A DNA stretch of 64,000 nucleotides from Azolla caroliniana (Eukaryota > Plantae > Polypodiophyta). Below are positions 1 through 64,000 of the stretch, one piece after another; position 1 is the first letter of the stretch, and every line of letters starts with the position of its first letter. The notes beneath the pieces were generated by a model, which did no database searches, was not told where the DNA came from, and saw only the letters and a list, made by a program, of their open reading frames with translations. Where the stretch lies: the NCBI GenBank assembly GCA_043228905.1, contig JBHGNT010000010.1, positions 6,200,001-6,264,000 on the forward strand. Reading direction: 5' to 3'. The position numbers and the translations under genes are program-made.

Positions 1-239
1 ATAATCGGTATTCGGCATATATATCCGAAGCGAACCGGGCTCACTCCGACTCGGCAACATTCGGGAAGACCAGTCGGTTCTGTCCCTCAAGCTACCGGAG
101 TCAACTCGAGCAAGTTCCGAAGCCGAACCGACTCGGGTTCAAATCTGACTAGAACGATATCGGGTGAGCCAACCGGCTACACTCCAACAAGGTTCGTAGT
201 CAACTCCGAACCGAGCTCCGTCAACCGAAACCAAATTTG

Positions 240-3200
240 ATGGCATCAACATCCGGCTCGTCAGAAATGAGTCTACGCAAGTTCGATGGATCGAACTTCA
301 ACTTCTGGAAGGAACAAATGCAGGACTATCTCATAGTCAAGGGGCAAATCGATCCCATCGAAAATGAAGAACCTCCAGAAGGATACAAACCAATTGAGTG
401 GCAAAAGTTGGACAGAATCGTCCGCGCCACGATTCGGATGCACCTATCGGAATCGGTATACTTTACGGTGCAATCGTGTACGACAGCATTCGAACTGTGG
501 AAAACACTGTCGGACACTTATGAAAAGAAGGTCGCCGCAACGAAGATGTTTCTGATCCGGCGCCTCTACAACTTGCGGATGAAAGAATCCGATTCGGTCC
601 AAGCACACCTCAATGAGTACGAAAGCATAAGCTCCCAAATCTCGTCACAGGGGACGGCAATCGAGGATGAACTCAGAGCAATGATACTCATGAGCAGCCT
701 TCCCTCATCATGGGAAACTTTCGTCACAACCGTGTGCAACGCGTCAACCACGGCTGTTAAATACTCCGAAGTCACGAGCGCAATCCTGACCGAAGCAGCT
801 CGGAGAAAGTCTTTCGCCAAAGACTCAACAGACGACGCCTATGTAGTACAAGGTTCGACAGACCGATCGAACATACGAGGAAGAGATTCCTCACGGCCGC
901 CGAACAATCAGCGAAGACGGAGCCAGTCACGGGATAACCGAATCTGCAACTATTGCAAGAAACCCGGACACATCAAAGCCGACTGCCGCGCACTCAAGAA
1001 CAAGAACAACAAGAAGAGTGGCCGGCATGAGGAGATCAATTGCGTCAGCTTCTCGGCTGATGTACTACCGGACGACCCGAATATACTATCAATCGAAAAT
1101 CCAGTCGCATCCGAAGTTCTGCTCACGACTGAAGAATCGAGCACATGGCTCTTGGATTCGGGCGCGTCATTTCACGTGACTCCTCATAGATCCCAATTTC
1201 GGCAATATACGGTCCGTCACTCCGACTCAGTTCGAGTCGGCAACTCACAACACTGTGACATCATCGGAATCGGCACAGTAGAGCTCAACCTTGCAGGTGG
1301 CTCTACACTTGTACTCCACAATGTCCGACATGTACCCGAGCTCTCAAGGCCATTGATCTCAGTCGGACAACTAGATGAAGACGGCATTCGTGCCGGTTTT
1401 TCTACGGGAGGGTGGACACTCCACAGGGGGAACCTCCTGCTTGCTAGAGGACCCAAGATACACTCCCTGTATCCGTTACATGTTACGCTCAGAGAGGGTA
1501 ACCTGTTTTTGGTGGATATTCCTGTGTCATCACTATGGCACCGGAGATTAGGACACCTCAGCAAGGCCGGCATCACGCATCTATCTAGAGCCGGATACAT
1601 CCCCAAACTCTCCTTCTCCGACCATCAATTCTGCGAGCATTGCCAGTATGGCAAACAAGCAGCCGTATCACACCCGACATCAGCACCAAGAGAAACGAGA
1701 CCTCTCGATTTGGTCCACTCGGACGTCTGTGGCCCAATGCCGCATCAGTCTCTTGGCGGTGCCTCTTACTTCGTCAGTTTTATTGACGATTCGACTCGAA
1801 AGGTGTGGGCTTATCCAATTCGCACCAAAGATCGTGTCTTCTCGATCTTCTCCGATTGGCTCGCTATGGTAGAAAATCAAACCGACCGAAAGCTGAAATG
1901 CCTTCGGACCGACAATGGGGGAGAGTTTAAATCCGAAGAATTCGTCAAATTTGCCGACAACGCGGCATCCGACGTGAATTTACGGCACCACACAGCCCGG
2001 AGCAAAACGGGATTGCCGAACGCATGAATCGGACAATCCAAGAACGGATAGTTTCCATGCTCCAACACTCCGGACTGTCGGATGGCTTCTGGGCAGAGGC
2101 TCTACTCACGGCAGTACACATAATCAATATGTCGCCAAGTAGACCTCTAGGACTTCAAATTCCTCAGGAACTATGGATCGGCAGTAAGCCGAATTACGAC
2201 AAGCTGAGGATCTTCGGATGCGAGGCGTACGCCCTTATTCCGAAAGATGATTGCCGAAAACTTGCACCTCGGTCCAGGAAATGCATTTTCCTTGGATATG
2301 GATCCGACGGCGAAATGGGATACCGACTCTGGGACCCCGAACGCAGACAAATCGTTCGAAGTTCGGACGTTGTGTTCAACGAGTCGGCTATGACTCCATC
2401 AGTCGAAAAACCGATCGAAGTCCGAAGGGTAACATTTTCCGATGTGCCGACCCTTCAAGAAGGCCCCGCTCACAACACACGGTCAGCTTCACGGGTAGCT
2501 GAACCTTACACTACCGACTCGGACAACTCTGACTCGGCACAGCCGAATGATTCGGTTTCGGACCATCCGACCTCGATACCCGATGCGACCAATCCAATCA
2601 TACCTCGACGATCCGAGAGACTGTCGCAACCTCCGGAGAGGTATTCTCCTGGAATTTTCTTCACCGACGCCGGCGAACCGACGTCTTACGAAGAAGCATC
2701 GACATCTGTCGATTCAGCCACCTGGCATCTGGCGATGGAGTCGGAAATGCACTCCATTCGGGCAAACAAGACTTGGGATCTGGTCAAATTACCTAGGAAC
2801 CGACGTGCTCTTCCTTGCAAGTGGGTTTATCGACTAAAAGAGACGTCTGATTCGACCACCCCAAAGTACAAGGCCAGATTAGTTGCGAAGGGCTTCCGAC
2901 AAGAATATGGCGTCGACTTCGACGAGATTTTTTCACCAGTGGTGAAAATGACAACCCTCCGTTTTCTACTCGGCGTAGTGGCAGCCGACAACTTGGAGCT
3001 AATTCAGCTAGATGTCAAAACAGCATTCCTCCATGGTGATCTTGAAGAGGAAATTTATATGGAGCAGCCAAAAGGCTTCGTGGCAACTAGCCAAGAACAT
3101 CTAGTCTGCCGACTCAGGAAGAGTCTATACGGCCTCAAACAGGCACCGCGACAATGGTACAAGAAGTTCGACGACTTCATCCAATCGATCGGCTTCTCAA

Positions 3201-4252
3201 AAAGCGATGAGGACCATTGTCTCTTTACCAACACAGCTCAAGATGGATCACCCATCTTCCTCATCATTTACGTGGACGACATGCTAATTTCTGGACGCCA
3301 CGCGGGCGAACTTGCCGATCTCGTTCGGCAACTGCGGTTGAAGTTTGCCATGAAGGACCTCGGTCCGGCACGACACATCCTTGGCATGAAGATTAGTCGG
3401 CATCGCGATAAACGACATCTTTTTTTGTCTCAGACCGACTATATCGGACGTGTCTTGGAACGCTTCAACATGCAATCAGCCAAATCTGCTTCAACCCCGC
3501 TCCCCATGAATCTTCGGCTCTCTCAGCGAGACTGCCCGACATCCGGTTCGGAGGGGGAAGATATGAAGTCGGTACCGTATGCACCGGCAGTCGGCTCCCT
3601 TATGTACCTGATGGTCGCGACACGGCCTGATATTTCTCACGCCGTAGGAGTCGTTAGCAGATTTATGCACAATCCTGGCCGATCGCATTGGAACGCAGTC
3701 AAGCATGTGTTCAGATATCTGGCTGGCACAAAAGACCACGGCATTCTTTTCGGTCCGAACCGAACCTCAGGCGTAGTCGGTTACACCGACTCGGATTTCG
3801 CCGACTGTATAGACAGTCGGAAATCAACAACCGGATACTGCTTCAAATTCGGCAATGGAGCAATCTCGTGGAAGTCGAAACTTCAGGAGTGCATAGCGAC
3901 CTCAACGACCGAAGCAGAATATGTAGCTGCGTCCGACGCAGCAAAAGAAGCTTTGTGGCTCGGTCGGCTGGCGCACACGTTTCGACAAGTCGACCATGAC
4001 TCGGCTCCAGTTGTCTACAGCGACAGTCAAGGTGCTGTTGCCTTGTCGAAAAATCCGGTTCACCACAACGCCTCCAAACATATCGACGTTCGATATCACT
4101 TCGTTCGGGACTGCGTCATTTCAGGGAAAATCGGTCTAGAGAAAATATCCACAACCGACAATGTCGCAGATGGAATGACCAAGTGTCTTTCGGCAGACCG
4201 TTTTCGGTCTCTTCGGCATCAGATGGGCGTAACGACAAACCAGTCCGGTTAG
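240..4252 (+). pseudogene. Copia gag-pol polyprotein with one frameshift (~1950)
   Basis: CNYCKKPGHIKADC knuckle, WLLDSGAS protease, LWHRRLGH/CEHC, HSDVCGP...TDNGGEF integrase, IYVDDML RT, YTDSDFA...TEAEY RNase H. Restoring one T at AAATTTGCCGA gives [32 protein letters not shown] and joins ORFs 237-2027 and 2024-4252. Confidence 0.93.
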
Positions 4253-4445
4253 AGCCGGACACAGAGCAGGATGGTTCCCGACAACCGACATCAGTTGCTT
4301 AATGATCGGCTTCAACTGTTCCGACCCGACCAGTTCGGTCTTCTGCCTTCGGACCCTGCCGACTCGAACAAAGCTGATATGTCCGAGAACCTAAGTCTAT
4401 ACTTGTAATCTAAGATAACCCATGTATACGCCCATTACGGGGGAG

Positions 4446-4652
4446 TGTCGAATACATGTGTATAATGGACGTATTCACACTATCCCGTTTTGGCCATTTA
4501 TGTAATTAGCATAAAGGGTAGTTGCCCTAAGTCGGTCACTATATATAGTGACCTTGTAACCTTTTTGTAAGGTTGGATGTTGTATTATTGCTTTATGGAA
4601 TAAAGAGTCTTTTGTGTCTCTCTCTCTCTCTCTCTCTGTGCAACGACCTACA
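4446..4652 (+). repeat. 3' LTR of the copia element
   Basis: Starts TGTCG right after the PPT and contains TATATATA, AATAAA and a (TC)n tract. The end (...CCTACA 4652) is inferred because the 5' LTR is not available for comparison. Confidence 0.7.
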
Positions 4653-6783
4653 ATCTCTCATACGCAGGTACTCAGATGAATCGAATGCTTCTTGATCTTC
4701 CGCATTGACGACCTTGTCCCCAACAGGGAGGGGGAGGTAGCCGCGGAAGACAACACAGCTGATGACGTCACCATTCGACAGCCAACGTCGCGGCCCTCGG
4801 TAACGTCCCCAGGACCTAGCCCACGCCCCAACACACAGCAGGTTGCACCACCACGACCACAGAAAAGGAAGCAGGCGGAGGAAACAACACTATCGGCCCC
4901 AGAACCCCAACCACAGCCAGGCAAAAGAAGATGACTCAACCGCGAGTCCTCGGAAGAACGGAAGGAGCCACAATAGGAGCAAGCCTTAGTGGTCAAACAG
5001 AGCAACTTGGCTATCACCCTTGCGGAGGCATCGCTGAACCAGGGAACGATCGAGCATGGGCAGACAACACAGATCTCGGAGGATGAAGTCCTCGGGTATA
5101 AGGACCTCCCCGCGGAGGCTTACGAATTTAGTGCGCTCCTCCGCCTTGGTACGTCATTCGAGCTGGTCGACTTCCTCACCAGAGCCCAAGTCGCGGCAGC
5201 CGCTCGGATGGCGGAAGAGCATGTCGAAACAAAAATGGTTCAAAGCGCGCTAATAGGTGAAATTGAGCCCCAGGAGGACATTGCTTTACAAAAAATCGGG
5301 AGGAAGAAGCAGGCAAAACAGGCCGCTCTCCTCATGGAGGTCCCCGAGTTGAACACGGCCCTTATCGAGGCATATCGGGACCTAGATCGCACTACGCGAG
5401 CAGCCAAAGACATGGCCCGAAAGATAAAAGTAGCCCAAAAACAGGCTAAGATGGCTACAGAGCTATGGCACGCTGCGAACCAGAAGCTGGCAGCCTGGGA
5501 GCAAAACCGGTTGGAACAACAAGTCCCGAGCCTTCCGGTAACGACTACCGAGGGCCTCCCAGCGCCCCCACGCATAACGATGATGGATGGAAGCACCATC
5601 ACCGACTCCATCCTGAAGGTGCAGGCCAGTACACAAACGGACTCGTTACAAATGATCGATGCCTGCACAACAACCGAGGCGGCCACGGCCGTGGAGCAAC
5701 TCAAACTAACCGCACCAACCAAGGAGGTGGCAACCCAGACAGAACCCCCGCTCCGGGATTACCGTGCGGAGCTTAAAGAAGAAGAACGGCGAACCGAGAG
5801 ACACGAGCAACGTCATCAAGAGGCAATGGCTCGCCTAAAAGAAGAAGCTTCCAAGCAGATGGCCGAGATAAGAGCCCAAGCCAACCAAAGGATACACGAG
5901 CAGCACGAAGCATTGGGCTAGGTACAAGCGCAAGCCGCGGCCAAGGAAGCCAAACTCAAAAGCAAGCTGGAGGAATACGCAACCACAGTAGTGAAGAAAG
6001 AGACGAAGGTTCTAGACCTACAGGCCGCGCTCGACAATGCCCACGACTGGAACCAACGGCAGGAGGAAAGAAATCGCGAACGGGAGGAGAGGATGAACGC
6101 GGAGAATGCCGAGCTGCAGAGTCAGCGGACGACCCTTAAAGAGATGGCTGACGAGTTTTTCATCAAGTGCAAGCTACTTTCCGAGCAAAAAGAGGCCTTA
6201 TCAGATTCCTACTTCACCCTACAAGAAGAGAGAATCGTCGAACGGGAACAAATCCGGCCCATGTGTCAGAAAGAATGGGAGCAGGCCACCGAAGAACTCA
6301 CGAAGCGTTACGAGCAAGCTCTCCAGCTCGTAACCGCAGATGCAAAGAACAGTCAGACCATCTATGAGCTAAAGACACAGAAGATTCAGGCCGAGGTCGA
6401 CGGCTTAAAACAGGAATTAGCAGCCATCCAAGCACAGCCCGGCATGGATGAGACACACATCCGCATACTGCTCGAGAAACAGCGCCAGCACCTTACCAAA
6501 AAGGTCGAGGAAACATTAAGTCGCACAGGAGACAAATGGGCAGCCCAAGCTACCGAATTGCATATTTTACGCGCTGACGCCGAGAACCGACGAAAGGAGG
6601 GCCGCGGCTTCTACAAAATGGACGAAGCCAGCATTCAAAATCTGCGTGTAGATTTAACCGAGGATTACCAGTCCTTGGCAAAATCTCACACCGTGGCAAT
6701 CGAGCAAATAATGGAGGACTTCAATGATAGTCAGATGTTGTTTCGCCTGGAAGTAGAAGCCTTCGAACGAGAATGACTCATTG

Positions 6784-8857: not shown

Positions 8858-11800
8858 ATGTTTGCCCATGATATGTTTACACCACGACAAGATGTTATGA
8901 CTATTTGTCTGACCTTATCTTATTTCTTTGCCAGAAATAATCATTCAATGGCTCAGAATAACGACCCGATGCCCTCCGCTCAAGCGGAAAGACCTCAAGG
9001 AAATCCTCCTGGGACAATGTCCATTGAGGCGTATATTTTACAAGTACAACATTTCCTTAGTTCAACCGCGCAGCAGTTGACCGAATTTCGGCAATCTCAA
9101 AGTGCTCTCGAGGCACGAGTCATTAGTCTCCAAAATGAGATTAATAGACCTGATGAGCGTCAGGGTGAACCATCATTTGTCGTAAAGCCATTTACGGGAG
9201 ATAAAAAGGAAAGAACCGAAGAAGCAATCTGCACGTGGCTGGGCCGATGGGAGTCTCATTTTGAGCTCTATCCCACGCCAGATAGTACGAAGATTGCATA
9301 TGTCGGCCGAGAACTAGGGGGTAAGGCCGCCGCTTGGTGGCGTGGGCTCCGAACTTTGGGGAGATTGCCCGAGACCTGGACAGACTTTGTCACAGTTTTC
9401 AAGGGTCAATTTCTACAACCTCCCTCTCGAACCGAGGCAGCACAAGCTTTAATGAACCTCTCTAGCAGGAAGTTTTCCTCGCTAGAAGACTATGTCCACC
9501 ATGCTAGAACCCAAATCCAAAAATCGGGTCTAGAAGGGGACAATTGGTTAATAGCTTGTTTTGTCAATGGCATCCCCAATTCGGACTATCACTGGATAGT
9601 GCACGATAAGGATCCAAAATCCTTCGAAGAGGCCGTTGAGATAGTTCTTCGCTATCAACGCACTTCGAAGAAGGACCATAACAAACCCAACGAAGCGCCC
9701 GGGACTAAGCAGTCGCAATTCGTTGGGAAACGCAAGACACCCAACGAATTCATGGATCGCGATTATAAGCGACAACATCCTTTTTGCGTATTCTGCAAAA
9801 AGAAGGGTCATACAAAAGAGCAATGTCGTAAGCTCCAACGAAAAGAGCACGACGCCAAACCTAAAGCTACAGACCATAAAGGTCAGATTCCTAATGTCCT
9901 TCAGGTCTATACACATCATTTGAGTAATTGTCAATGTTCTTTCCCTCATTATGTATTGGGTCCCAATGATTTACTACGTGCAAACGGGTATATCAATGGA
10001 TCTCCCGTACAATTTTTATTTGATTCGGGAAGCTCACACAATTTTGTGAATGATCGTTTGGTACAGATATGGGGAATCCAACCCACCGTAAGTGATCACA
10101 CCTACACGGTGCACTTGGCTGATGGAAGAGTACAACACATCAACGGGGCGATTCATTCTTTAGGAATTTCTATTGATACCTATATAGAGGAAGTAGACTT
10201 CCATGTAATGAATCTTAGTACCACCGATGTAATACTGGGTTATCCCTGGTTTTATAATAAAAGCTCTTCTTTATTTATTGATTGGGTTCGCCATTCCATT
10301 TCTTTTGTACTCAACGATTGTACGCATTTTATTCAATGTGTAACAAAACAATCCTTCTCGATTGTTTCCTCGTGTCCATCAATATCCGAGTTGTCTTGTT
10401 CTACGTTATTTTATTGTGTACTTGATCCGGACATTCACGTTTACAATATCGATAATGTCTCGGGTCAATTAACATATTTTGAACAAAAACAACTTGATGA
10501 AATCGTAAACGATTTTCGTGATGTTTTTCCGAGTGAACTACCCGATGGTTTACCTCCTAAACGTAATATAGACCATCGTATAGATATTGTACCTGGCATT
10601 GCACCCATTAGTATACCTCCGTATCGCCTAAGTCGATCTGAAGAGGATGAGGTAGCTAAGCAACTTAAGGACTATTTACGAATGGGTTATATACGTTATA
10701 GTAAATCTCCATGGGGTGCACCAGTTCTCTTGGTTAAAAAGAAAGAGGGCACATGGCGTATGTGTATTAATTACCGACGCTTGAATAAAGTGACGATCAA
10801 GAATTCGTACCCATTGCCCCGGGCTGACGATCTAATTGACCGTCTCCAGGGAGCTCGGTATTTTACGAAACTTGATCTCCGTACTGGCTACCATCAAATA
10901 CGAATAAGTGAGGACGATGTTCCTAAAACAGCATTTCGTACGCGCTACGGCCATTATCAGTTTTTGGTTATGCCTTTTGGTTTGACCAATGCTCCGGCTA
11001 CATTTCAACAAGAAATGAATGACATTTTCCGAGAACAACTTGGAAAATTTGTCGTTATCTTCTTAGATGATATTTTAGTTTATAGCCGTACATTACAAGA
11101 ACATGCTAGACATGTCCGCTTTGTTTTACAAATATTGCGTGACAAACAATTTTACGCGAAGATCTCAAAATGTGAGTTCTTCAAGAAATCAATTACTTAT
11201 CTTGGACATCTCATAACCGAACGAGGAGTTGAAATTGATCCTTCTCGCATCGAGAAAATCAAGCTTTGGCCCACTCTTCGGAATATTCGAGAAGTTCGAT
11301 CATTCCTTGGTTTTGTCGGATTTTTGCGAAAATCTCTTCGTAATTACTCACAATTGACGACGCCGTTTACTGATCTTCTAAAAGGTCAAACGCGTAAGTC
11401 TACAAAACCTATTGTGTGGAATGCTACACTAGACCTCGCCTTTAAGGAACTCAAGGACTTGGTATGCAAGGCTCCTTCACTTCTTTTACCCGATCCTTCA
11501 AAACCTTTTGAGGTTGAAACCGACGCAAGCGATTATGCTATAGGTGTTGTCTTGTATCAAGATGGTAAACCAATAGCATTCGAGAGTAAGAAACTTGATT
11601 CTGCTCAATGTCGGTATACCGTTCAAGAAAAGGAATTATTTGCGGTTATACATGCGCTCAAAACATGGCGCCATTATCTTTATGGAAATCGCTTTGTGGT
11701 AACTACGGACCACGAGTCCTTGAAATATTTTTGTGACCAACAAGACCTGAAAGGTCGTAAGGCACGATGGGCTGATCTCATCCAGGACTTTGATTTTTCC

Positions 11801-13381
11801 ATACGATATCGTAAAGGTTCCATGAATACTGTCGCTGATGCACTAAGTCGCATCCGTGAAGTTAACATGCTTAGCTTCACTGAAATAACATCAGATCTTT
11901 ATGATCACCTTCGAGGAAAGTATCCTGATGACAATTATTTTGCAAAATACTGGGCAAGAGTCGAGTCTGGAACAGACACCACCACACCCTCGAAGGAATA
12001 CTTCCACATTGCTAACGGTCTGCTCTACCGTAATGGGAAGGTTTGTGTTCCAGATTTACCTGAGGTCAAAAAGAGAATTCTTTTTGAATGCCATGATGCA
12101 CCCTCAGCAGGGCACCCTGGAATACATCGTACACTCGTTCTCATCTCCACTCAATTTTATTGGCCTAAGATGCGTCCTGACATACATAGCTATGTGACTA
12201 AATGTCACCAATGTCAGGTTAACAAAGCCGAGCGACTTAAAGCCGCAGGACTTTTACATCCCTTGGACATTCCCAATAATAAGTGGGAAAGTATATCCAT
12301 GGATTTTATTGTTAGCCTTCCTCGCACCCAAAAAGGTCATGATGCCATATGGGTTGTGGTTGACAGACTAACTAAAATGGCCAGATTTATTGCTACTAAA
12401 ACCACGGTAACAGCTCCTGAATTGGCTTACCAATTCGTTGATGAGTTATTTCGTTTTTACGGGTTACCGATGGATATCGTGAGTGACCGAGATCCGAAGT
12501 TTACTAGTGACTTCTGGACGCAAGTCTTTAAGAAGTTAGAAACTACGTTGAGCATGAGCTCCACGGATCATCCTCAATCCGATGGACAGACAGAACGAGT
12601 AAATCAAATTATTGAGGACATGCTTCGAGCATACGTTGGTGCAAAACCAACAAAATGGGAACGTTACCTCCCAATTTTGGAGTTTGCTTATAACAGCTCC
12701 AAGCATACGTCGACGGGATATAGTCCTTTTATGTTGATGTATGGATTTTAGCCACGAGCCCCGATTGATGTTAATATACATCATGATGAGTTGCGAAGTA
12801 CGCAAAACTTTCTTCGGGATATGCAACATATGTTGCATATTGCACGGGATAATATAAAAACAGCTCAAGATAGAGCGTGTTTTTATGCCGATCATCACAG
12901 GCAACCTCGTGTATTCAGCCCTGGACAGAAGGTATTTTTACGTGTACCTCACAATTCTAAGACATTGTCTACGGGTAAGTGCGCTAAGTTAGCCCCACGG
13001 TTTTGTGGACCTTTTACAGTCCTCAAACGCATTGGATCATCAGCCTATCGTCTCGCTCTTCCCGATGGTGTTGGAATCCATCCAGTCTTTCATGTAAGTC
13101 GTCTAAAAGAACTTCTAGGTTCTGGCGACAATACAGTTACAACTGAAACTCTGGTTACTTCTGAAGATTTATCTTCTAAACCACATGTACCAGAAAGAAT
13201 TCTCGATGTTAAAACAAAAAAATTACGTGCTAAGGAAATCCGAGAATTTAAAATAAAATGGATGGATAAATCAATCAAAGATGCCACATGGGAACGCGAA
13301 ACGACTCTAACAACTAACTTCCCTAACTTTCCATTGCAAGAGTGCAATGTTTTAAAGAGGGGGAGTATGTTACGGGCATGA
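8858..13381 (+). pseudogene. Gypsy gag-pol with one in-frame TAG (12749-12751)
   Basis: [14 protein letters not shown] knuckle, [10 protein letters not shown] protease, [21 protein letters not shown] RNase H, HHCC and SDRD...QTER integrase, GPF motif, chromodomain PERILD...KIKW...ATWE. ORFs 8858-12751 and 12791-13381 are in the same frame. The true start may be the ATG at 8948. Confidence 0.93.
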
Positions 13382-46930: not shown

Positions 46931-47071
46931 AAAACTATACATACATATTGATATATGTATAGGTGTAGGTAGGAAGAGAATGAGCAAGAAGCTATGACAA
47001 GTGGATTTTACATACAATTATGTATTGTACATAAATATATCATATATGTAATTGTGTCCTTTTACTAGGGG

Positions 47072-47234
47072 AAAAAAAACAGAAAACAAAAGAAAAAAGA
47101 GAAAAAGAGAAAAAAAGCAAAACAACAAAACAAAAAGCAAAACGCAGAAGAAAAGCAAAGCGCAGAGCAAAAAGCAAAAACGCAGAAGAAAAGCAAAACG
47201 CAAAAAAGACGAAAAACAGAGAAACAAAGAAAGC

Positions 47235-47265
<31 letters not shown>
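47072..47265 (+). repeat. A-rich low-complexity tract plus (GA)n immediately upstream of the Dicer ORF
   Basis: Degenerate AAAAGCAAAACGCAGAAG units, then (GA)n. Confidence 0.85.
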
Positions 47266-47307: not shown

Positions 47308-50300
47308 ATGGAGAGAAAGAAGAAAGCATCGCAGACATCTTCAAGTTTCCATGCCAATGACCCTCTTCTCGCAGTGAACCCTGGCGCTACCAGGTTTAAG
47401 CCACAGGTAAGCTTCTTAACTCTCCAAAACCAGTCTACCAAAGCAAAGCCTGATGCAGAAGAAGTCAAAAGCTTCCCCATCCCGTCTTCTCAGACTAAAG
47501 ATGTAGAGAAACCTACTCCTAGAGGTTATCAGATGGTTCTGTTCCAGAAAGCTTTGCAAGAGAACACCATTGTTTACCTCGAAACTGGATGTGGAAAAAC
47601 GCTGATCGCTGTGCTGCTTATCAAAGAGCTTAGTTCACTTCACAGAGAGAAAAAAGAAAAGTTCTCTGCTGTGTTTCTCGCTCCCACTGTTCATCTGGTC
47701 AACCAACAAACGGAAGTTATGAAGATCAATACTGATCTTCAAGTGGAAAGCTTCTATGGAGCCAAAAAAGTAGACAATTGGAGTGCCTCTAATTGGAAAT
47801 ATCAGTTCGATCGAAATGAGGTTTTAGTGATGACGCCAATGGTTCTTCTCGATGCGATGAGACATGGATACTTGAAGATGGAAGACTTTGATCTCATCAT
47901 CTTCGATGAATGCCACAGTGCTCAGAAACAACATGCATATGCAAAGATAATGAGAGAATATTATCATACACTCGGTCAAAAGAAGCCGAAAATCTTGGGG
48001 ATGACTGCTTCTCCAGTCATTAACAAAGGAGTGACTTCTTCTGAAGATTCGGCAAAGCAAATCCAACAACTAGAGACATTGCTGGATTGTAAAATATTTA
48101 CTCTTGAAGATAAAACTGAGCTCGAAAGCTTTGCTCCTACACCTATCCAAACATGTAAGTCGTATGAGTTTTCATCACCATCATTTGATGATGTCATCCA
48201 TTCCTTGAATTGTAGCTTGAAGAGATATGAGGATCATTATAATTCCATGATGAAAAATAACAATTCTTTTAAAGACGTGGAAGAGATAGCGAAGAAACTT
48301 CATCAGAAAGTGAAGAAGATGCATAGTGCTTTGAAATACAGCTTAGAAGAATTGGGTCTCTTGTGTGCAAGAGAATCAGCTAAGTGCTTGCTTAGAAAGA
48401 CAAATAATGAGATGGTATGTGATGATAATCCGATGCAGAATAACATAGAAAGCTTCCTCACGGAGGCACTGAGGGTTTTTAGTGAAGCCATGGATGCAAG
48501 ATCATCTGATCCACAAATAAATAGCATTGAAGATTGCTTGGCCGCTGTTGAGAATGGCCTTCTGACATCAAAAGTTGTTTTACTAGTAGAAAGTTTGATT
48601 GAATATAGAGATACAAAGGAACTTCAGTGCATCATTTTTGTGGATAGAGTTATTGCGGCAATTGTTTTGACAGAAATTTTATGCAAAATAGGTTGCTTAT
48701 CCTTCATCAGGTGTGGATATCTATCAGGAACAACAGCATCATTGGATATGATGGGAAAGAAGGAGCAGCAAAGTGCATTACAGGGATTTCGAAGTGGGAA
48801 ATTTAATGTATTAATAGCTACAGATGTGGCCGAAGAGGGCCTTGACATACAGAGTTGTAGTTCCGTGATTAGATTTGATTTCCCAAAGACAGTCAGAAGC
48901 TATATACAAAGTCGTGGTCGTGCGCGACGGCCGAATTCAGACTTCATCATATTTCTTGAAAAGAACAACCGGAAGCACACTGATCTGTTGGCAGAATTGA
49001 TGCAAAGTGAAGTCTCAATGAGAGATGAAGCTATCAATAGAACCCGTGTATTGGTCGCTATTGAGGAGGAGCCATATAAAGACACGGAGATTCTTCATGT
49101 TGACGAGACAGGCGCGACCATTAATCTAAACTCAAGCATAAACGCTATCCATAGTTTCTGTTCGAAGCTTCCTGGTGACAAATATTATAAGCCTATGGCA
49201 GAATTCGTGTATGAAACTATCAGGGGTGATGATGTTGTGCATGTTTGTAGGCTCATTATGCCTTCAAATGGACCTTTTCGGGAAATGATTGGGCCACCGA
49301 GGAGGAGCAAATCCCTTGCTAAGCAATCTGTATGTCTAGAGGCTTGCAAGAAACTATATGAAATGGGCCAAATGACTGAACATCTGACACCTGCCATTGA
49401 TGTAGATAAGGAGGATGAAGAGGAGAAGGTGATGAATGTCTTAGGGAAGAATGTTGCTGGTGCAGGCACAACTAAGAGGAAGGAATTGCATAACACGGCT
49501 GTAACAGAAGCTTTTGCTGGAGATTGGATCAACAGTTCAGAAAATGTTGTGCTTTATGCTTATGTTCTTTGCTTCAGTTCTACGGAAGAGGGGAGTCAAT
49601 ATTCAGACTTTGCTTTATTGTTTAACTCTGCCATTGATGATGATATACTGAACCATGAAATTCCTCTTTATTTAACAAATGATAGAACTGTAACTACAAG
49701 AATATATGCAGGTGGCACCTACTCTTTGAATTCTAATCAGCTTAAAGAGGCGAAGACATATCAGCAATTGATATTCAATGGAATGTTTGGAAAATTGATC
49801 AGACGGTTGAGAAAGGAGGGACCATCTTCGCATGAGACAAGAATGCAAAATTTGCTTTCATCTCAATGCACGTTGGATGAAACATGGAACCCCTTGTGTA
49901 TGTTTTTGCTGCTTCCTTTAAGTTTAGCGAAACTTTCAGATCAGTCTGATGTTATACCTATTGATTGGGAAGCTATAAGAAATGCTGCAATGGCTGCAAG
50001 TATGTTCTCTGATCTTTTTGCTATTTGTAATGGTAATCAAACCCAAAATACAAATGCTTCCTCAGATGAAAAGAATATTAGTCATGGCAAAAAAGTCTTG
50101 CATATGGCATGTAAATCAGCATCCTATCAAATGGTTCGAGGTATGGCTGTGATCACCTGTCATACGGGAAGGATTTATTCCGTCACTGATGTGCTGGAGG
50201 ACAAAGATGCTAATTCGGCTATCGAAGGGGGGTCATCAAATTACACTTCTTATGCACATTACTTTGCAGAAAAATATAACTTGTCTTTGCAGTATCCTCT

Positions 50301-52722
50301 TCAACCACTGCTTTCAGTGAAGCACAGTCATCGAATACATAACCTCCTCACGAAAGATCCTTCTAAGAACAAGGTGAAAGAAACAAAGAAAAATTACAGT
50401 GTACAGATTCCACCTGAATTGTGTTTCTTGACTGGGATATCAACTGCAGTTGTGCACTCTTTGTATCTTTTACCATCTATCATGCATCGGTTCAATGCAT
50501 TAATTTCAGCTGCAGAGCTGAGGAATAAGATAGCAAAAGAAATTCCTGAATGCTATCGTATTCAGCCTTCACTTGTGATGAAGGCTCTCACAACTCAGAG
50601 ATGCTTGGAGTCCTTCTCATCCGAAGGATTGGAATTGCTGGGTGATTCTTTCTTAAAATATGCAGCTAGCCGGTATCTTTATCTTGTATTCGATAAGAAA
50701 CACGAAGGACAATTGACTGCAAGGAGATGTAGGTTAATCTGTAATGAGAATCTTCATAAATTGGCTATGAAAAGGCAATTGAGTGGATATATACGAGACG
50801 AGCCATTCCAGCCTGATTATTGGTATGTTCCCGGAATGCTCTGTACTCAGTCAATTCAATGCAAATGCAACTTAGGGAACTTGTCATGTTGGCAAAATGA
50901 ACATCATCAAGAGGAGGAAAAAAGTAATAGAGTGTTTAAAATTGGAAAGAGTTGTAGTAAAGGGCATCGATGGATTTGTTCCAAAAGTGTTTCTGATGCA
51001 GTAGAGGCTTTGATTGGAGCCTTTGTAGTCTCTGGTGGTGCAGGCCCTGCAGTGGGCTTTATGAAGTGGATTGGCTTTGAGATTGATTTTGACCAGTCGT
51101 TGTATGAAATGGCAAGGAAAAGATGCAATATTTATCAGACAGATTTGAACAAGGTGAATATTTCTGGTCTAGAAGCACAACTAGGCTATGAATTTGGCAA
51201 TAAATCACTCCTTGTTGAGGCATTAACACATGCCTCACATCATGATCTGAATGGAGGATGGTGCTATCAACGCTTAGAATTTCTTGGTGATGCTGTGCTT
51301 GATTTTCTCATCACGCGCCATCTTTTTTTTGCTCACCCTGGCCTTTCTCCAGGTGTCCTCTCGGACCTTCGTTCAGCAGCTGTGAATAACCATTGCTTTT
51401 CTCGAGCTATCATCAAACACAACCTTCAAAGGTATTTGCGCCATGCATCATCAGAGTTGCTCTCTCAAATCACAAATTTTGTTAGGGCTACTCAAGCCTC
51501 TACAAAGCAGGGTGACCATGTGTTTGGTTGGGAAGGTGTTGAAGGTCCAAAAGTTCTTGGAGACCTTTTTGAGAGTATTGCTGGAGCAATATTAGTGGAT
51601 AGTGGATTTGATTTGGAACAAGTATGGAGTGTAATGGAACGGTTATTATCTCCATTAGTAACACCGTTGACTTTGCCACTTCATCCCATTAGAGAATTTC
51701 AAGAGTTGAGCCAATTAAGGCAAATACCATTCCAATGGAAGAAGGTAGAAAGACATGGTTTGAAGTCAATAGCTACACTTGAATTGTGGCTTGGTAGTGA
51801 GGCGTTCATAAAGACTGGCTCAGCACGAATTATGAAGATAGCCAGAAAAAATGCTGCACAAGGGGCTCTCTCCCTATTAAGTAGTAGGGGAATAATTCAT
51901 CCTCGGAGGTTAGAACAGTCTAGAACCGATTGTGACACTCTAATTGATGATGTTAATGCCAGTGACATATATGATGTTGAAGGAAGCCAGAATCATAATA
52001 TGAGTGCTTTAGAAGATGGTGAGGAAAGTAGCTCAAAAAATAATATAGCTTCTAACCTTGGAGGAAAGCATGTGATTGAGGGTGAACTTGATGAAACAGG
52101 GAATATATCCTCATATAAAGATTATGATAACACCCCAAAATCTAGAAACCCTGCATTTGATGGAGGAGTTGGTTCTGATGTAACAAAGAAGAGAGGTTAT
52201 TCTGATGTGAGCTCTCTTGAAGTGGAGAGCTCAAAAGACAGCAAAGATCTAGTGCTTGAAAAAGGATTAGATAATGGTGTAGCGGGTAGCCCTAGTGGAA
52301 AAAGAAGGAAGGACGTTGCATATACTTCAATGAAATTGGAGAGACCTTGCTCGTATCATGGTGACATGGCTGAGGTGACTATTACAGATGTGAATGTGAG
52401 ATTACGTAGTAAAGACGAGAAGGAACTTATAATGAAGGCCAGTGCAGACTTACGGAAAGATCTAGAGTGCAATTTGTTTGAGAAAGGATGTGGTCGAGCT
52501 CTTCTCAATGGATTTTGCCTCAAGCATAAATGGACTGGACCACAATATGAGCTGCTTCCACAAGGTCAAGGTCATGTGGGTCTCTTTATGTTCTCTGCAT
52601 CCATCCATGGTCCTCTTGGTATCATCAAGTGTATGGGTGATCCTATGCCCAGAAAGAACCAGGCCAAAGATAATGTAGCTGCCAAAATTCTTATGACCCT
52701 TAGTCAAACTTTCTCGAGCTAA
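47308..52722 (+). CDS. DCL3: Intronless Dicer-like endoribonuclease, DCL3-like (~1804 aa from ATG 47308)
   Basis: One uninterrupted ORF: LETGCGKT, IFDECH, GMTASP, ATDVAEEGLDI/YIQSRGRAR helicase; DUF283 (ETGATINLNSS...CSKLPGDKY); PAZ region; RNase IIIa ELLGDSFLK...SDAVEALIG; RNase IIIb QRLEFLGDAVLD...GDLFESIAG; two dsRBD-like segments. The GAGTTKRKELH linker is what I associate with DCL3, so the subfamily call is less sure than the Dicer call. Confidence 0.9.
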   Translation: MERKKKASQTSSSFHANDPLLAVNPGATRFKPQVSFLTLQNQSTKAKPDAEEVKSFPIPSSQTKDVEKPTPRGYQMVLFQKALQENTIVYLETGCGKTLIAVLLIKELSSLHREKKEKFSAVFLAPTVHLVNQQTEVMKINTDLQVESFYGAKKVDNWSASNWKYQFDRNEVLVMTPMVLLDAMRHGYLKMEDFDLIIFDECHSAQKQHAYAKIMREYYHTLGQKKPKILGMTASPVINKGVTSSEDSAKQIQQLETLLDCKIFTLEDKTELESFAPTPIQTCKSYEFSSPSFDDVIHSLNCSLKRYEDHYNSMMKNNNSFKDVEEIAKKLHQKVKKMHSALKYSLEELGLLCARESAKCLLRKTNNEMVCDDNPMQNNIESFLTEALRVFSEAMDARSSDPQINSIEDCLAAVENGLLTSKVVLLVESLIEYRDTKELQCIIFVDRVIAAIVLTEILCKIGCLSFIRCGYLSGTTASLDMMGKKEQQSALQGFRSGKFNVLIATDVAEEGLDIQSCSSVIRFDFPKTVRSYIQSRGRARRPNSDFIIFLEKNNRKHTDLLAELMQSEVSMRDEAINRTRVLVAIEEEPYKDTEILHVDETGATINLNSSINAIHSFCSKLPGDKYYKPMAEFVYETIRGDDVVHVCRLIMPSNGPFREMIGPPRRSKSLAKQSVCLEACKKLYEMGQMTEHLTPAIDVDKEDEEEKVMNVLGKNVAGAGTTKRKELHNTAVTEAFAGDWINSSENVVLYAYVLCFSSTEEGSQYSDFALLFNSAIDDDILNHEIPLYLTNDRTVTTRIYAGGTYSLNSNQLKEAKTYQQLIFNGMFGKLIRRLRKEGPSSHETRMQNLLSSQCTLDETWNPLCMFLLLPLSLAKLSDQSDVIPIDWEAIRNAAMAASMFSDLFAICNGNQTQNTNASSDEKNISHGKKVLHMACKSASYQMVRGMAVITCHTGRIYSVTDVLEDKDANSAIEGGSSNYTSYAHYFAEKYNLSLQYPLQPLLSVKHSHRIHNLLTKDPSKNKVKETKKNYSVQIPPELCFLTGISTAVVHSLYLLPSIMHRFNALISAAELRNKIAKEIPECYRIQPSLVMKALTTQRCLESFSSEGLELLGDSFLKYAASRYLYLVFDKKHEGQLTARRCRLICNENLHKLAMKRQLSGYIRDEPFQPDYWYVPGMLCTQSIQCKCNLGNLSCWQNEHHQEEEKSNRVFKIGKSCSKGHRWICSKSVSDAVEALIGAFVVSGGAGPAVGFMKWIGFEIDFDQSLYEMARKRCNIYQTDLNKVNISGLEAQLGYEFGNKSLLVEALTHASHHDLNGGWCYQRLEFLGDAVLDFLITRHLFFAHPGLSPGVLSDLRSAAVNNHCFSRAIIKHNLQRYLRHASSELLSQITNFVRATQASTKQGDHVFGWEGVEGPKVLGDLFESIAGAILVDSGFDLEQVWSVMERLLSPLVTPLTLPLHPIREFQELSQLRQIPFQWKKVERHGLKSIATLELWLGSEAFIKTGSARIMKIARKNAAQGALSLLSSRGIIHPRRLEQSRTDCDTLIDDVNASDIYDVEGSQNHNMSALEDGEESSSKNNIASNLGGKHVIEGELDETGNISSYKDYDNTPKSRNPAFDGGVGSDVTKKRGYSDVSSLEVESSKDSKDLVLEKGLDNGVAGSPSGKRRKDVAYTSMKLERPCSYHGDMAEVTITDVNVRLRSKDEKELIMKASADLRKDLECNLFEKGCGRALLNGFCLKHKWTGPQYELLPQGQGHVGLFMFSASIHGPLGIIKCMGDPMPRKNQAKDNVAAKILMTLSQTFSS

Positions 52723-53090
52723 ATATCATCAAGTGTATGGGTCCTCTTGGTATCATCAAGTGTATGGGTGATCCTATGCCCAGAAAGAACCAGGCCAAAG
52801 ACAATGTAGCTGCCAAAATTCTTATGACCCTTAGTCAAACTTTCTCGAGCTAAATATCATCAAGTGTATGGTTCCTCTTGGTATCATCAAGTGTATGGGT
52901 GATCCTATGCCCAGAAAGAACCAGGCCAAAGACAATGTAGCTGCCAAAATTCTTATGACCCTTAGTCAAACTTTCTTGAGCTAAATATCATCAAGTGTAT
53001 GGGTGATCCTATGCCCAGAAAGAACCAGGCCAAAGACAATGTAGCTGCCAAAATTCTTATGACCCTTAGTCAAACTTTCTCGAGCTAAAT
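52611..53090 (+). repeat. Four-copy tandem array of the Dicer terminal coding segment (periods 131, 131, 104 bp)
   Basis: GGGTGATCCTATGCCCAGAAAGAACC... begins at 52635, 52766, 52897 and 53001. Each copy ends in ...GAGCTAAAT. Confidence 0.95.
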
Positions 53091-53329
53091 ATTAAGAAAC
53101 ATTATTTTCTTGACCATTGTTTTACATCAGGGCTGATGGTGTTTGGGTCATTATGAGGGAGTGGTTCCAAGTAATACTCAATGGCTCTAGTAATGACTTA
53201 AAGGAAGTTAGAGTCTATATGCTGAATGAATATTCAAAGGTAAAAGCATTTGTATTGCTATAACATTTATTCAAGGGTCGTATTTCTTCTAATAGACATT
53301 TGGTACAAGCTAAAAGAGGGATGATCATT

Positions 53330-55840
53330 GTGTGATCATTATGAGGGATGGGTGGTGGTTGTGTGAGAAGAGAGAAAGTAGAAAAACTATGCAAAAAAAT
53401 GGAGAGGAATCCCTAGCCGCTAAAAGTCCCTATCTCATTATGAGACATTTGGGACCAATTATTATTGATAAGTAACTTTTAGGTCATTTTGGCATGTTTA
53501 GACATGGCCAATGACTAAAAGTTGTAAAAATTTCGGCCAAAGATTTAGTAAAAGTGTGTCTAGAAAGCTCTCGAAGGAGCTTTCACATGGAAAGGTCAAA
53601 ATATACTAAAACAAAAGTCTTTAGGGTCTCAATCCCCAACAACCTCCCACTTAAAAGACCAAGGAAGCTCCTTTAAGCTAAGTAACTCCCACCATCTATA
53701 TACGTAGCTAATGTTGTGCCTTGGGTAGACACTTTGTAAGAGCATCTACAGGATAATGTCAAGTATTGACCTTGATCAAAGTGATTAGGCCATCCTCTTT
53801 GATGAAGTGGTATCTCACATCAATATGGTTTGTGCGAGCATGAAACATTGCATTCTTTGCCAAACATATGGCACTTTAGCTATCGCATCCAAACTAGTGC
53901 CAAACTCATTGCACAAGTGGGCTAACCAAATGGCTTCTTTGGAAGCCTTTGTTGCTGAAATATATTCAGCCTCTATAGTTGATAAAGCTACTATCCTTTG
54001 AAGTCTAGATCACTATGAAATAGCTCCACCTACAAGGGTGTGTACATAGCCACTTGTGGACTTGTGTATATACACATAACCAGCCATGTTTGGATCACAA
54101 AATCCTTTTAACTATAATGAACTCTTTCCATAACATAGGCATTAACCTTTAGTCCCTTTCAAATATCTCAAATAGAGTTGATTGCCTCCCAATGAGCTCT
54201 ACTAAGATTAGCCATCGACTTGCTAATAATTCCGATTGCATGAGCAATGGCTGGCCGAGTGGCAACCATTTCATACATATGTGAACCACAAGCTGATGCA
54301 TATGGAATATTCTTCATGTAATTTGTTGCATCATCATCTTTGGATAATTATCCTTGGAAAGCCAACATGTGGTTGCAATGGCACTCCAAGAGGCTTAGCA
54401 TTAGCCACATTAAATTTGTCCAACACGGTCTTTCATTGATAATGTAGAGTTGAGATGGTGTTTTAGAGCATTCAAAGTGCTCTTTTTCTTCCGTATCAAC
54501 AACATATCATCTACATATAGTATGAGAATAATTGGGTTGCTATCTTTGTCCGTTTTATTATGCAAGCAGTGGTTTGCAAGGCTTCTTTTGAACCCATGTT
54601 TGAGCATAAATGCACCAAACTTATTGCCCGGGGCTTGTTTCAATCCATGTAAGCTCCTTTTCAGCTTGCATGCCAAATGCTCTTTTCCGTGAATGACATA
54701 TCCTTTTGGTTGTTTCATGTACAACTCTTCATCTAAATTACCATGCAAAAAGGTTGTTTAAATATCCATTTGGAATAATTCCAAATCCAAGGTGGCTGTG
54801 AGAACAAACAAGAGATGTAGTGTGCTAACCTTACCCATTTGAAAACCTCTTGGAAATGAATGCCCTCTTTTTGGGGATTTCCCTTGACAATCAAGCTTGC
54901 CTTATATTTGGGTTTGCCATCAATAGTTTTGATTTTGTATACCCTCTTGTTTGGAATGGCCTTCGTACAACTTTGGGCAACTCAACCAAATCCCAAGTAT
55001 CATTAGCATCAAACTTGGCCATTTTGGCTCATGTGGCCAAGCCTTTCATGCCATAATTTCATAAGTGAATGGATTTCAGCCAAGGCAATAAACTTGCCAT
55101 CAAAGCTTTACCATGCAAGCAATATAGAGTCCCTTTCTTTGTACCTTTAATAATTAGCCAAGAGCCTTTGATAAGCTTCCATGAACCTTTGTCAAAGATT
55201 GTATTATATCCATGCATATCCATTTGTCTGACAATAAGCTTTTCTTGATGCTTGGTACATACCTTACATCATGCAAAGCCAACTCATTAGTATCATCCAC
55301 TATGAGATGCATTGTGCCAATACCTTCAATAAAACAAGCATGGTTATTTCAAAGATATACATGTCCATGGTTGCTTGCATGAAAGGTAGTAAAACACTCC
55401 TTACTAGGAGTAATATGAAATGATGCACCTAAATCCAAAATCCACGTTTGTGATAAAACATCTTTCAGAGTAAGCAAGACATCAATTACATCGCTCTTTG
55501 TAATCTGCATACCATATGCATGAATATAAATAGAAACATCATTAACTTCAGCACAAAGAATATCTTCTACATCTGATGGCTCCTCAATGATGGCACTACA
55601 AGCCACACTGGTCTTCTCTTTGTCCTTGTCCTTAAAGTTGTTATGTGCTTAATTTCCGGTGTCCTTTGTCTTCTTGTCACGTGTGTTCTTTCTTTTTTTC
55701 TAATTTAGCTTTGTGGTACCTGCAATTAGGGTTCTTATGACTTTTCCTACCACATTGATAACAAATCATTTCAACCTTGCCTTTGCTTTTGCTCCTGTTG
55801 TACATTTTCACTTTCTTATTTGTTCTTCCTCTAGCCACAT
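53330..55840 (-). mobile_element. Internally deleted, decayed Ty1/copia remnant
   Basis: Minus strand: CYQCGRKSHKNPNC knuckle, WILDLGASFHIT protease, HGNLDEELYMKQP/LYVDDML RT, RNase H remnants, PPT AAGTGGGAGG, then an LTR beginning TG at 53641. Integrase is missing and the distal LTR end is approximate. Confidence 0.85.
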
Positions 55841-56130
55841 TGGCTACCAAAATTCTTACAACCATTGGTCAAACATTCTCAAGCTAAATATTGAGAAACA
55901 TTATGTCCTTGATCATTGTTTTACATCAGGCCTGATTGTTTTTGGGTCGTTTTGAGGAAGTGGTTCCAAGTAATACTCACTTAATGGCACTAAGTTGAAT
56001 GAATATTCACAGGTAAAAGCATTTGTACTACTAAATCATTCCCATCATAACATTTACTTGTCCCTATCATAACATTTATTCAAGAATTAGATCATAATTC
56101 TTCTAATAGACATTTTGCACAAGCCACAAA
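55841..56130 (+). pseudogene. Diverged orphan copy of the Dicer last codons and 3' flank
   Basis: GCTACCAAAATTCTTACAACCATTGGTCAAACATTCTCAAGCTAA (ATKILTTIGQTFSS*) versus AAKILMTLSQTFSS*. The downstream ~240 bp aligns with 53087-53310. Confidence 0.85.
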
Positions 56131-60949: not shown

Positions 60950-63900
60950 GAAATGTGTGTGAGAAAAGCTGTTAACCATAGCGGCAGAACAGTTGTTAGA
61001 ACAAAATAGACACAGCCAAGTTGTGAGAAGGCTGTTAGACAGCAGTAGAAAAAATAGTTGCAAAGAGTAGAGACACAACCAAAGAGTAGAGCTTGTTTGT
61101 AAGTAGCAACAAAAGTAAAAGTCTTTACAAAAGAGGCTGGTATAGCCTCTTTATACAAGATTGGGGAAAGTGGGTTAAATGGTTGTTTGGTAGTTAAGTG
61201 ACTCTTATATTAAACAGGTACAATAAACTAGGAATAAGAGGGAATATCTTGGAAAAAGTGGAAGAGAAAAAAGGCATTTAAAGCGTTGCAGATTCTAGAG
61301 AGAGAAGGCATTCAAAGAGTTGTAGATTTTAGAGAGAGAAGAATCTAGGAAGAGAGATAATCAAAGATAATAAAGATGAAAGAGAGTGCATGTCTAGAGT
61401 TGCCACCCCCAACACCTCCTCTCAGCTCCAGAAAAATGGTCCAACATTGAGTCAACCGAGGAGCTGATCAATGAATGGCTTGCCTTAGAAGTGGCTTAGT
61501 AAATAAATCAGCCCCATTTTCTTGAGTAGGACAATATGCCAAGTTGATGACTTGTGATTTCACTAATTCACGAGCAAAATGGTAGTGCACTTCGATATGT
61601 TTTATTCTACCATGAAATGTTGAGCTATGTGCCAAGGCACACGCACTTTGGCTATCGGTGAAAACTGCAATAGGAGAGTCTTGCAAAACACCAATGTGAG
61701 AAAACAATTGCATTAACCATAGCAACTCACAACAAGTATCCACATAGGCACAATATTCAGCTTCGGTCGATGAAGTAGAAACTGAGTTTTGCTTCTTTGA
61801 TTTCCAAGAAATCAAGCTTGAACCTAACATAAAACAATAGCCAGATGTGGACCTTCTAGAATCAATATCACCTGCCCAATCAGCATCTGACTAGGCAACA
61901 AGCGCAATGCCACCTCTAAAAGACAAACCACAGTCGAGTGTGTTGGCCAAATACTGAAGAACTCAAATAGTTGATTGCCAATGACTTTGTCTTGGAGCAC
62001 TTGAGAATTGGCTGAGAATACTCACGCTATAGGACAAACCAAACTTGGTGTAAGTTAAGTGAAGAAAAGACCCAATTAACCTTCTATATTTCGTGATATC
62101 TTCAAATATGGGAGAATTGTCTTCACGAGATAGCTTTGAGTTTGGATCCATTGGACAGGAGAGTGGCCTGCAATTTGGCATGCTATAGGACTCAAGGAAC
62201 TGCCTGAAATACCCATGTTGGCTGAGGAAGATATCACTATGTGATTGATAGAACTCCATACCTATAAAATAATGGAGAAGTCCTAGATCAGTCATTTCAA
62301 AGGTTGTTTTGAGGTTAGTGCGGAGCTCCTCGATTTTAGAAGCAAGGGACCATGTAATTAGAAGGTCATCAACATATAATATGATCAAGCATAACAAATT
62401 ATCTTGGGAAAAAACATAGAGATTGCTATCAGCATAAAAGTTCTGAAAACCCAAGAAAGAGAAAGAATGTATCAATCTTGTCATGCCAAGCTTTGGGAGC
62501 TTGCTTTAAGCAATACAAGGATTTGTGTAACCTGTAGACCATGTTTTTTTGCTTTGAAAAACTCAAAACCTAGAGGTTGTTCAACATAAACCTCCTCTTT
62601 CAAGTCACAATTAAGGAAGGCTGACATGACATCCATTTGAAAGATGGGCCATTTGTTGTGAGCAGCAAGTGCAAATGCACATCGAATAGAGGGGTACCTT
62701 GCTGTTGGAGCAAAACTTTCCTCGTAATCCACTCCTTCGATTTGTGAGTAGCCTTTAGTAACTAAACGTGCCTTGTGCTTATCCAAAGTACCATCAGCAT
62801 GGTACTTGGTCTTGAAAATCCATTTCAGTCCAATGACTTGTCAATGTTGAGGCTGTGGAACCAACTCCCATGTATGATTCCACTCAATGGAATCAAGTTC
62901 AACTTCCATTACTGCTTTCCACTTTGGAAGAACAAGGGCCTCTTTTACGGTTGTGGGTTCTTGTGATTGCACAACAATGCATAGTAAGGCAAAGTTGCAC
63001 AAGTAAAGAGGCCGTTGTGACCTACGTGTTCTTTTCATGTTGGTTGGAGAACCAGATGTATACTCATGAAGCTCAGAATCGAAGAGATGAGAATCACAAA
63101 TGGTGGCTTAAATCAATTGGGAAGTGGTGGAAGCTGGTGTGTAGAGGGAGGGGAAACAAGTGGATTTGAGGGAGAGATTTGAATTGTTGGCAAAATTAGA
63201 GATTAAGTAGGAGGATATGGGGGGCTTGAAGGTGAGACATCTTCGTCTAAAATAGGAGATTCCGGCGAAGTTGGGATTTCAACCGTGAACTCAGGTGAAA
63301 TCCTATCCGGCTGAGACTCCACAAAATGAACATCCCTAGAGATGACTAGGGACTTTGATTCTAAATCCCATAACCTGTCGGCTTTAGATTGTGTGTTGTA
63401 ACCAAGAAATTTGCATTTCTTGGTTTTGGACTCAAATTTAGTCCTTCTATGATCTGAAATGTGAACATATGCATCACAACCAAAGACTTTAAAATGATAA
63501 ACCGAGAGCTTTACACTTGTAAATGCTTCTACAGGGGTCATTGCAGCAGCTGCTTTTGTTGGGCAGCAGTTGATGATGTAGATTGTTGTGTTGACAGCTT
63601 CACCCCAAAACGAGAGAGGAAGATTAGATTGAGATAGCATTGTACAAGCCATCTCTTGGAATGTCCGGTTCTTCCTTTCCACAACTCATTTTGTTGAGGA
63701 GTATTGGGTGTAGAAAATTGGCGAGCAATGCATTGTTGAGAGCAGAAATGGTAGAATGCTTGGGAGATAAACTCTCCACCATTGTCAGACCTGATCTTTC
63801 GAACTTTCTTTGATGTCTCGTTCTCAACAAGAGCTACCCATTCTTGAAATTTGGTGAAGGCTTGAGATTTCTCGACAAGAAAATAAACCCAAACCTTGCG

Positions 63901-64000
63901 GGAGAAATCATCAATTATAAGCATAGTATGAACCATACGTACCATATGTGCATTTGCATTCGCGAATGTTTCAATCATTCACATAAGAGAAACAGCCTCA
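60950..64000 (-). mobile_element. Decayed Ty1/copia element (integrase-RT-RNase H, PPT, 3' LTR), continuing past the window
   Basis: IDDFSRKVWVY/SDNGGEF integrase, [33 protein letters not shown] RNase H, with frameshifts and stops. PPT GAGAGGAGG, then LTR TGTTG starting at 61414; the distal LTR end is approximate. Confidence 0.9.

Follow-up and report, generated by a model that had tools for sequence, protein, structure and literature searches.

We analyzed a 64,000-nucleotide (nt) stretch of DNA from the fern Azolla caroliniana (GenBank assembly GCA_043228905.1, contig JBHGNT010000010.1, forward-strand positions 6,200,001 to 6,264,000; hereafter the window, in whose coordinates all positions are given). 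It contains an intact fern gene for the Dicer-like (DCL) protein DCL3 that has no coding introns and is kept by selection. The segment 47278..52722 of the plus strand is a single open reading frame (ORF) of 1814 codons when counted from a GTG; from the first ATG at 47308, it encodes 1804 amino acids (aa) followed by a stop codon (47308..52722, +). No other ORF of more than 150 codons lies between 46 and 54 kb, and the second-longest ORF of the whole window has 1297 aa. Local GC content is ~39%, for which our own arithmetic gives an expected stop rate of ~0.06–0.07 per codon and an estimated chance near e^-120 of 1800 stop-free codons, so a frame of 1804 codons is not attributable to chance. 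The coding sequence (CDS) is free of internal stops and frameshifts, and its annotation as a single-exon fern DCL3 orthologue draws on the ORF, Pfam domains, motifs, database matches, and a phylogenetic tree.

The features by which a plant DCL is recognized are all present, namely a helicase with Helicase_C, DUF283 with PAZ, and a pair of RNase III domains that both carry the residues E, D, D, and E; all are encoded on the plus strand. The DExD/H helicase core (aa 74–236; 47527..48015) was identified by PF00270/PF04851 and by motifs: the DEAD/ResIII match covers aa 72–236 in Pfam, and the motif search put the Walker A sequence GCGKT at aa 94 and the DECH motif at aa 200. It is followed by the Helicase_C domain (PF00271, aa 431–542; 48598..48933), the Dicer_dimer/DUF283 domain (PF03368, aa 610–696; 49135..49395), and the PAZ domain (PF02170, aa 937–1058; 50116..50481). 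Ribonuclease_3 (PF00636) was found by Pfam in two stretches, the best of which is aa 1321–1433. Together with the motif search, these delimit the RNase IIIa catalytic core (E1109/D1113 to D1230/E1233; 50632..51006) and the RNase IIIb domain (aa 1321–1433; 51268..51606), and the catalytic tetrads of both are complete (E1109/D1113/D1230/E1233 and E1324/D1328/D1419/E1422, respectively). A weakly conserved linker of ~195 aa (aa 1531–1725) precedes a C-terminal second double-stranded RNA-binding domain (dsRBD; PF14709/PF00035, aa 1729–1799; 52492..52704), and both termini of the protein align with those of other fern DCL3. An earlier reading of the window, made from its letters alone (hereafter the sequence-only reading), had described an uninterrupted 5.4-kb ORF with every Dicer domain and both acidic tetrads, and the ORF, Pfam, and motif searches bear this out.

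The second dsRBD, as recognized by PF14709, is also found in fern, Ginkgo, Cycas, and some conifer DCL3. It is kept in the window protein and missing from most angiosperm DCL3 matches listed, a distribution that suggests its loss or degradation in angiosperm DCL3.

Relationship to other DCL3 proteins

Database matches were obtained by a word-indexed protein search, and all statements on them rest on the 120 best matches (lowest score 993 bits). Every named protein among these is a DCL3 or carries an unspecific Dicer name; none is named DCL1, DCL2, or DCL4 down to the 993-bit floor. The top matches are ferns (in percent identity, two Logan contigs with 57–60%, Adiantum capillus-veneris with 52%, A. 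nelumboides with 51%, and Ceratopteris richardii with 50%), followed by Ginkgo, Cycas, and Pinus DCL3 at ~1400–1470 bits and then by a lycophyte, liverworts, and angiosperms. The window protein itself is not in the database searched, its closest match there being 57–60% identical. Each annotated fern genome is represented by one DCL3 cluster only.

We reconstructed a maximum-likelihood tree from 31 DCL3 proteins, with support from the Shimodaira–Hasegawa-like approximate likelihood ratio test (SH-aLRT). The window protein is nested in the fern clade (SH-aLRT = 100%), within which the branching order is P0005, the window protein, P0001, P0002, and then Ceratopteris with the two Adiantum species, where P0001, P0002, and P0005 are transcript-like contigs of other ferns. 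The window protein consequently branches below the three Pteridaceae DCL3 and below two of the contigs. Seed-plant DCL3 is the sister of the fern clade, and the lycophyte and bryophytes lie outside. As judged from the matches and this topology, the window protein belongs to the DCL3 clade, and, because the gene tree mirrors the species tree, the window gene is best regarded as an ordinary fern orthologue.

Compared with the three Pteridaceae gene models (A. capillus-veneris GOP47_0016112, A. nelumboides L7F22_022992, and C. richardii KP509_14G005300), the window protein has the same domain order and the same two termini at 50–54% identity. With Arabidopsis DCL3 (PDB 7VG2/7VG3) and other seed-plant DCL3 it shares the helicase, DUF283, PAZ, two RNase III domains, and the catalytic residues, whereas identity to angiosperm DCL3 is only ~37–41% and the seed-plant genes have many exons. 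By homology, the enzyme would cut the double-stranded RNA made by Pol IV/RDR2 into small interfering RNAs (siRNAs) of 24 nt for RNA-directed DNA methylation (RdDM). Ferns do produce 24-nt small RNAs, and fern transcriptome surveys have recovered DCL genes together with 24-nt small-RNA peaks (PMC5569507).

Selection and expression

The ratio of nonsynonymous to synonymous divergence (dN/dS) was estimated by the Nei–Gojobori method on codon alignments. Among fern genes for which dS is unsaturated, dN/dS is 0.13–0.19 overall, with 0.144 between the two Adiantum genes (dS = 0.53), 0.156 between P0001 and P0002, and ~0.15–0.19 between the window gene and P0001 or P0005. Synonymous sites are saturated between the window gene and Pteridaceae. 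The ratio is well under 1 in every domain, the tightest constraint being in RNase IIIb (0.02–0.09) and the weakest in the ~195-aa linker (0.36–0.70).

A closer comparison was available from sequencing-run contigs, which we used as divergence data; such contigs carry no starts, ends, or strand of transcripts. Contigs of run X9, from a relative ~5% diverged, cover 47313–52906, and their indels are all net multiples of three (−9, +3, −3, +6, +3, a −2/−1 pair separated by five bases, and a replacement with a net change of −6). In a sample of substitutions (40 of ~290 differences listed), 20 of the 37 coding substitutions are synonymous, where ~9 would be expected under neutrality, and 22 of the 37 fall at third codon positions. 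The window DCL3 is under purifying selection and pseudogene status is excluded, in agreement with the sequence-only reading, which had supposed that the gene was kept under selection and had proposed the dN/dS calculation.

Expression of fern DCL3 is suggested by transcript-like contigs of 5.9–6.6 kb from three other ferns, one of which turned up in four runs belonging to a single study. Although run X9 amounts to only 88 million letters, it covers almost all of the coding region at a word depth of 6–15, with coverage ending near the ORF ends. Such a pattern is closer to what a transcriptome would give than to a genome skim and would be at most a hint of transcription in a close relative.

Run X20, whose organism label is that of the runs best matching the window DNA, contains three kinds of DCL3 contigs over 50700–52640: one identical to the window, one of the type of the ~5%-diverged relative, and a third, low-depth variant with one nucleotide inserted at 51317 and one deleted at 51400, both inside RNase IIIb. 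A mixed or polyploid sample could account for this, as could additional DCL3 copies, of which one may be decaying.

Loss of introns in fern DCL3

Intronless DCL3 is the normal state in every fern genome checked. The DCL3 genes of A. capillus-veneris (5340 bp, protein of 1779 aa), A. nelumboides (5412 bp, 1803 aa), and C. richardii (5373 bp, 1790 aa) each have a length of exactly three times the protein plus the stop codon, so that Adiantum and Ceratopteris DCL3 are intronless too. The three genomic loci translate without interruption into the deposited proteins, and the two shorter isoforms of Ceratopteris differ only in being truncated at the N-terminus. These single-exon CDSs of 5.3–5.4 kb fall in the same clade as the window gene. 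The sequence-only reading had counted an intronless DCL3 as the usual condition of this lineage among the findings that would speak against its claim, and the public gene models of three ferns have it so.

In other land plants, DCL3 is divided into many exons. We mapped the stored protein of each species on its own locus and counted exon blocks, of which there are at least 10 over 9.4 kb in Marchantia (liverwort), at least 17 over 63 kb in Diphasiastrum (lycophyte), and at least 20 over 93 kb in Amborella (angiosperm). When well-localized junctions were projected onto the window protein, introns near aa 72, 216, 240, 400, 434, 989, 1089, 1158, and 1525 proved common to at least two of these three species, and those near aa 1089 and 1158 to all three. 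On these shared positions, at least nine DCL3 introns can be dated to the ancestor of land plants or of vascular plants; the ancestral gene was thus intron-rich, in keeping with the ~20 or more exons that the sequence-only reading gave for land-plant DCL genes, and the fern state is derived. The mapped ancestral introns are missing throughout in all four fern genomes (the window and three Pteridaceae), with no partial set kept. Contigs P0001, P0002, and P0005, of a uniform 5.9–6.6 kb with ragged ends, are transcript-like and so uninformative on introns; none of the three carries a poly(A) tail.

We consider it probable that the window gene is an ordinary, functional fern DCL3 orthologue whose intron loss is inherited and old and came about, most plausibly, through a single step of reverse transcription. 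The ancestral multi-exon DCL3 would have lost all its introns before the split of the window lineage and Pteridaceae, the likeliest route being a single step via a reverse-transcribed mature mRNA. Since some 20 introns are gone, none is kept in the fern genomes checked, and neighboring genes keep theirs, one reverse-transcription event is the simplest account, and we infer both the reverse-transcriptase mechanism and the single event on these grounds. The step could have taken either of two forms, which are equally possible: a retrocopy at a new locus may have outlived and replaced its multi-exon parent, or complementary DNA (cDNA) may have recombined into the original locus and converted it in situ. 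A more specific version has a retrocopy of more than 5.4 kb of mature DCL3 mRNA displacing the multi-exon gene in an early ancestor of the ferns, with no other DCL3 serving at least the core leptosporangiates since then; it seems to us about evenly balanced between right and wrong. The processed-mRNA origin put forward in the sequence-only reading therefore stands as the most economical explanation, with an old event, but not as something special to this genome, given three other intronless ferns.

The likeness to known retrogenes is partial. Orphan or replacement retrogenes are retrocopies that have replaced their parent gene. The window DCL3 resembles them in that all parental introns are absent (a continuous ORF against at least nine mapped ancestral introns), in being orthologous and constrained, and in that no multi-exon copy was detected in related genomes. 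It is unlike classical retrogenes in that a poly(A) tail, a target-site duplication, and a new position are not demonstrated, and a CDS of 5.4 kb is unusually long for a retrocopy.

Several points weigh against the interpretation of an inherited, single-step loss in a functional DCL3. In a PDB sequence search, Arabidopsis DCL1 scored slightly above Arabidopsis DCL3 (880 and 826 bits, respectively, with DCL4 at 777 bits), and the tree contains DCL3 only, with no DCL1, DCL2, or DCL4 outgroup. Arabidopsis DCL3 is fast-evolving, and in view of the lead of DCL1 over it we rested the assignment on the wider match list and the tree, because non-angiosperm DCL3 score far higher and the topology is that of the species tree. 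Transcription in the window's own species is putative: none of the runs listed is recorded as RNA, and the RNA status of the four used here is a guess. The 3′ flank has no poly(A) tract after the stop codon, where a 131-nt repeat gives way to unique sequence, and no convincing target-site duplication was found, only chance-level short direct repeats flanking the gene. The sequence-only reading had already remarked on the lack of both, which a very old event would lead one to expect. Translated comparison (tblastx) of the window flanks with 3–10 kb on either side of the Adiantum and Ceratopteris genes revealed neither synteny nor a conserved neighbor. A second, multi-exon DCL3 elsewhere in this genome would fall outside the scope of the search. 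Finally, stepwise loss, or independent losses in two fern lineages, is less parsimonious yet possible.

This last alternative, in which the window lineage and Pteridaceae shed their introns separately from each other, or singly by recurrent partial cDNA conversion, is in our view unlikely. It gains from the lack of both common insertion-site evidence and synteny, and from the earliest-branching fern (P0005) as well as P0001 and P0002 being known only as transcript-like contigs; all mapped ancestral introns are nevertheless gone from four of four fern genomes with no partial set, and two complete losses of ~20 introns make a far less parsimonious account than a single one. Much less credible is a species- or genus-specific retrogene that supplies an additional Dicer, which may have an siRNA class to itself, and that exists alongside a multi-exon DCL3 or has recently replaced one. 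The sequence-only reading had entertained such a lineage-specific Dicer, and an intact, intronless gene, together with more than one sequence variant in run X20 that could mean extra copies, would be compatible with it. The idea is disfavored by the single-exon orthologues in three Pteridaceae genomes, by the agreement of the fern clade with the species tree, the window protein sitting where its species would lead one to expect, and by the match list, in which no annotated fern genome has a second DCL3 cluster; the extra X20 variants are ~5%-diverged versions of this intronless gene rather than a multi-exon parent, and nothing points to a new kind of Dicer or small-RNA class. Slightly less credible still is a young processed pseudogene or silent relic with its frame still open, for which one could cite the undemonstrated transcription in this species and the X20 variant with +1 and −1 nt in RNase IIIb, but which is at odds with 1804 open codons and intact catalytic residues, with dN/dS well under 1 in every domain, with the synonymous excess and in-frame indels relative to a close relative, with synonymous saturation against other ferns (the gene being old and still intact), and with the transcriptome-like, near-complete coverage that X9 appears to provide.

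The production of 24-nt siRNAs for RdDM has its entry point in DCL3; fern genomes are huge and transposon-rich, and their RdDM machinery has been little studied. In the published literature, including PMC5569507, PMC7994812, and PMC11799827, we came across no mention of fern DCL3 lacking introns or being a retrogene. The state seems to be unreported, though it can be read from public annotations of three fern genomes. The contrast between the single-exon fern DCL3 genes checked and the intron-rich ones of the liverwort, the lycophyte, and the angiosperm provides a clean marker of fern evolution that can be dated and read from gene structure, and also a rare case of a very long gene that has lost every intron and is still essential; a single-exon DCL3 would also be a simple target for fern knockouts or heterologous expression. 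If a retrocopy did replace its parent, reverse transcriptase would have remade the very Dicer that keeps retrotransposons in check, and splicing-independent expression might contribute to the regulation of fern RdDM. We regard the finding as of moderate interest for the evolution of small-RNA pathways and for fern genome research.

Flanking sequence and neighboring genes

At its 3′ end, the gene runs into a 131-nt tandem repeat (52609..53105, +), which repeat comparison resolved into ~3 copies at 98% identity and a partial copy of 104 nt. Its first unit opens within the final 38 codons, 114 nt ahead of the stop codon, and contains the end of the protein; the 3′ flank accordingly carries further copies of those 38 codons with their stop, a feature in which the window gene differs from the Pteridaceae models. 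A contig of run X6 (52609–52769, 0 differences) crosses the first repeat junction, and the organism label of X6 differs from that of the runs best matching the window DNA. Directly 5′ of the start codon lies a purine-rich low-complexity tract with a (GA)14 microsatellite (47071..47265, +), presumably part of the 5′ untranslated region or of the core promoter. A poly(A) remnant of DCL3 would lie at the other end of the gene.

A 20-nt direct repeat (18/20 identical) at 46309 and 53710, ~1 kb either side of the gene, was considered and dismissed as chance, equally good unrelated pairs occurring in the same 14 kb. The sole strong flank match was likewise rejected as evidence of synteny because it is a Ty1/copia polyprotein (RVT_2, rve, and SH3_retrovirus). 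Ty1/copia remnants lie at 61468–63978 (−) and, more weakly, at ~53800–55800, and match a copia element upstream of Ceratopteris DCL3. Downstream of the window DCL3, the segments 53044–53353 and 55843–56129, ~2.8 kb apart, share several collinear direct repeats at 84–88% identity, which may represent a small element flanked by long terminal repeats (LTRs) or else a segmental duplication.

Between 28207 and 39915 lie pieces of an HSP90 gene (GRP94-type) on the minus strand and of an HSP70 gene (BiP-type) on the plus strand. Both are split into several ORF pieces and hence contain introns; the pieces were searched singly rather than as a joined spliced model. The sequence-only reading had credited the other host genes of the window with ordinary introns, and this holds for these two, which the check covered. 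A scan of the whole window against Rfam gave no match. Farther upstream, the GC-richer stretch at 237–6776 and 8858–12751 (+) carries ORFs of 596, 742, 310, 261, and 1297 aa, which are probably LTR-retrotransposon polyproteins.

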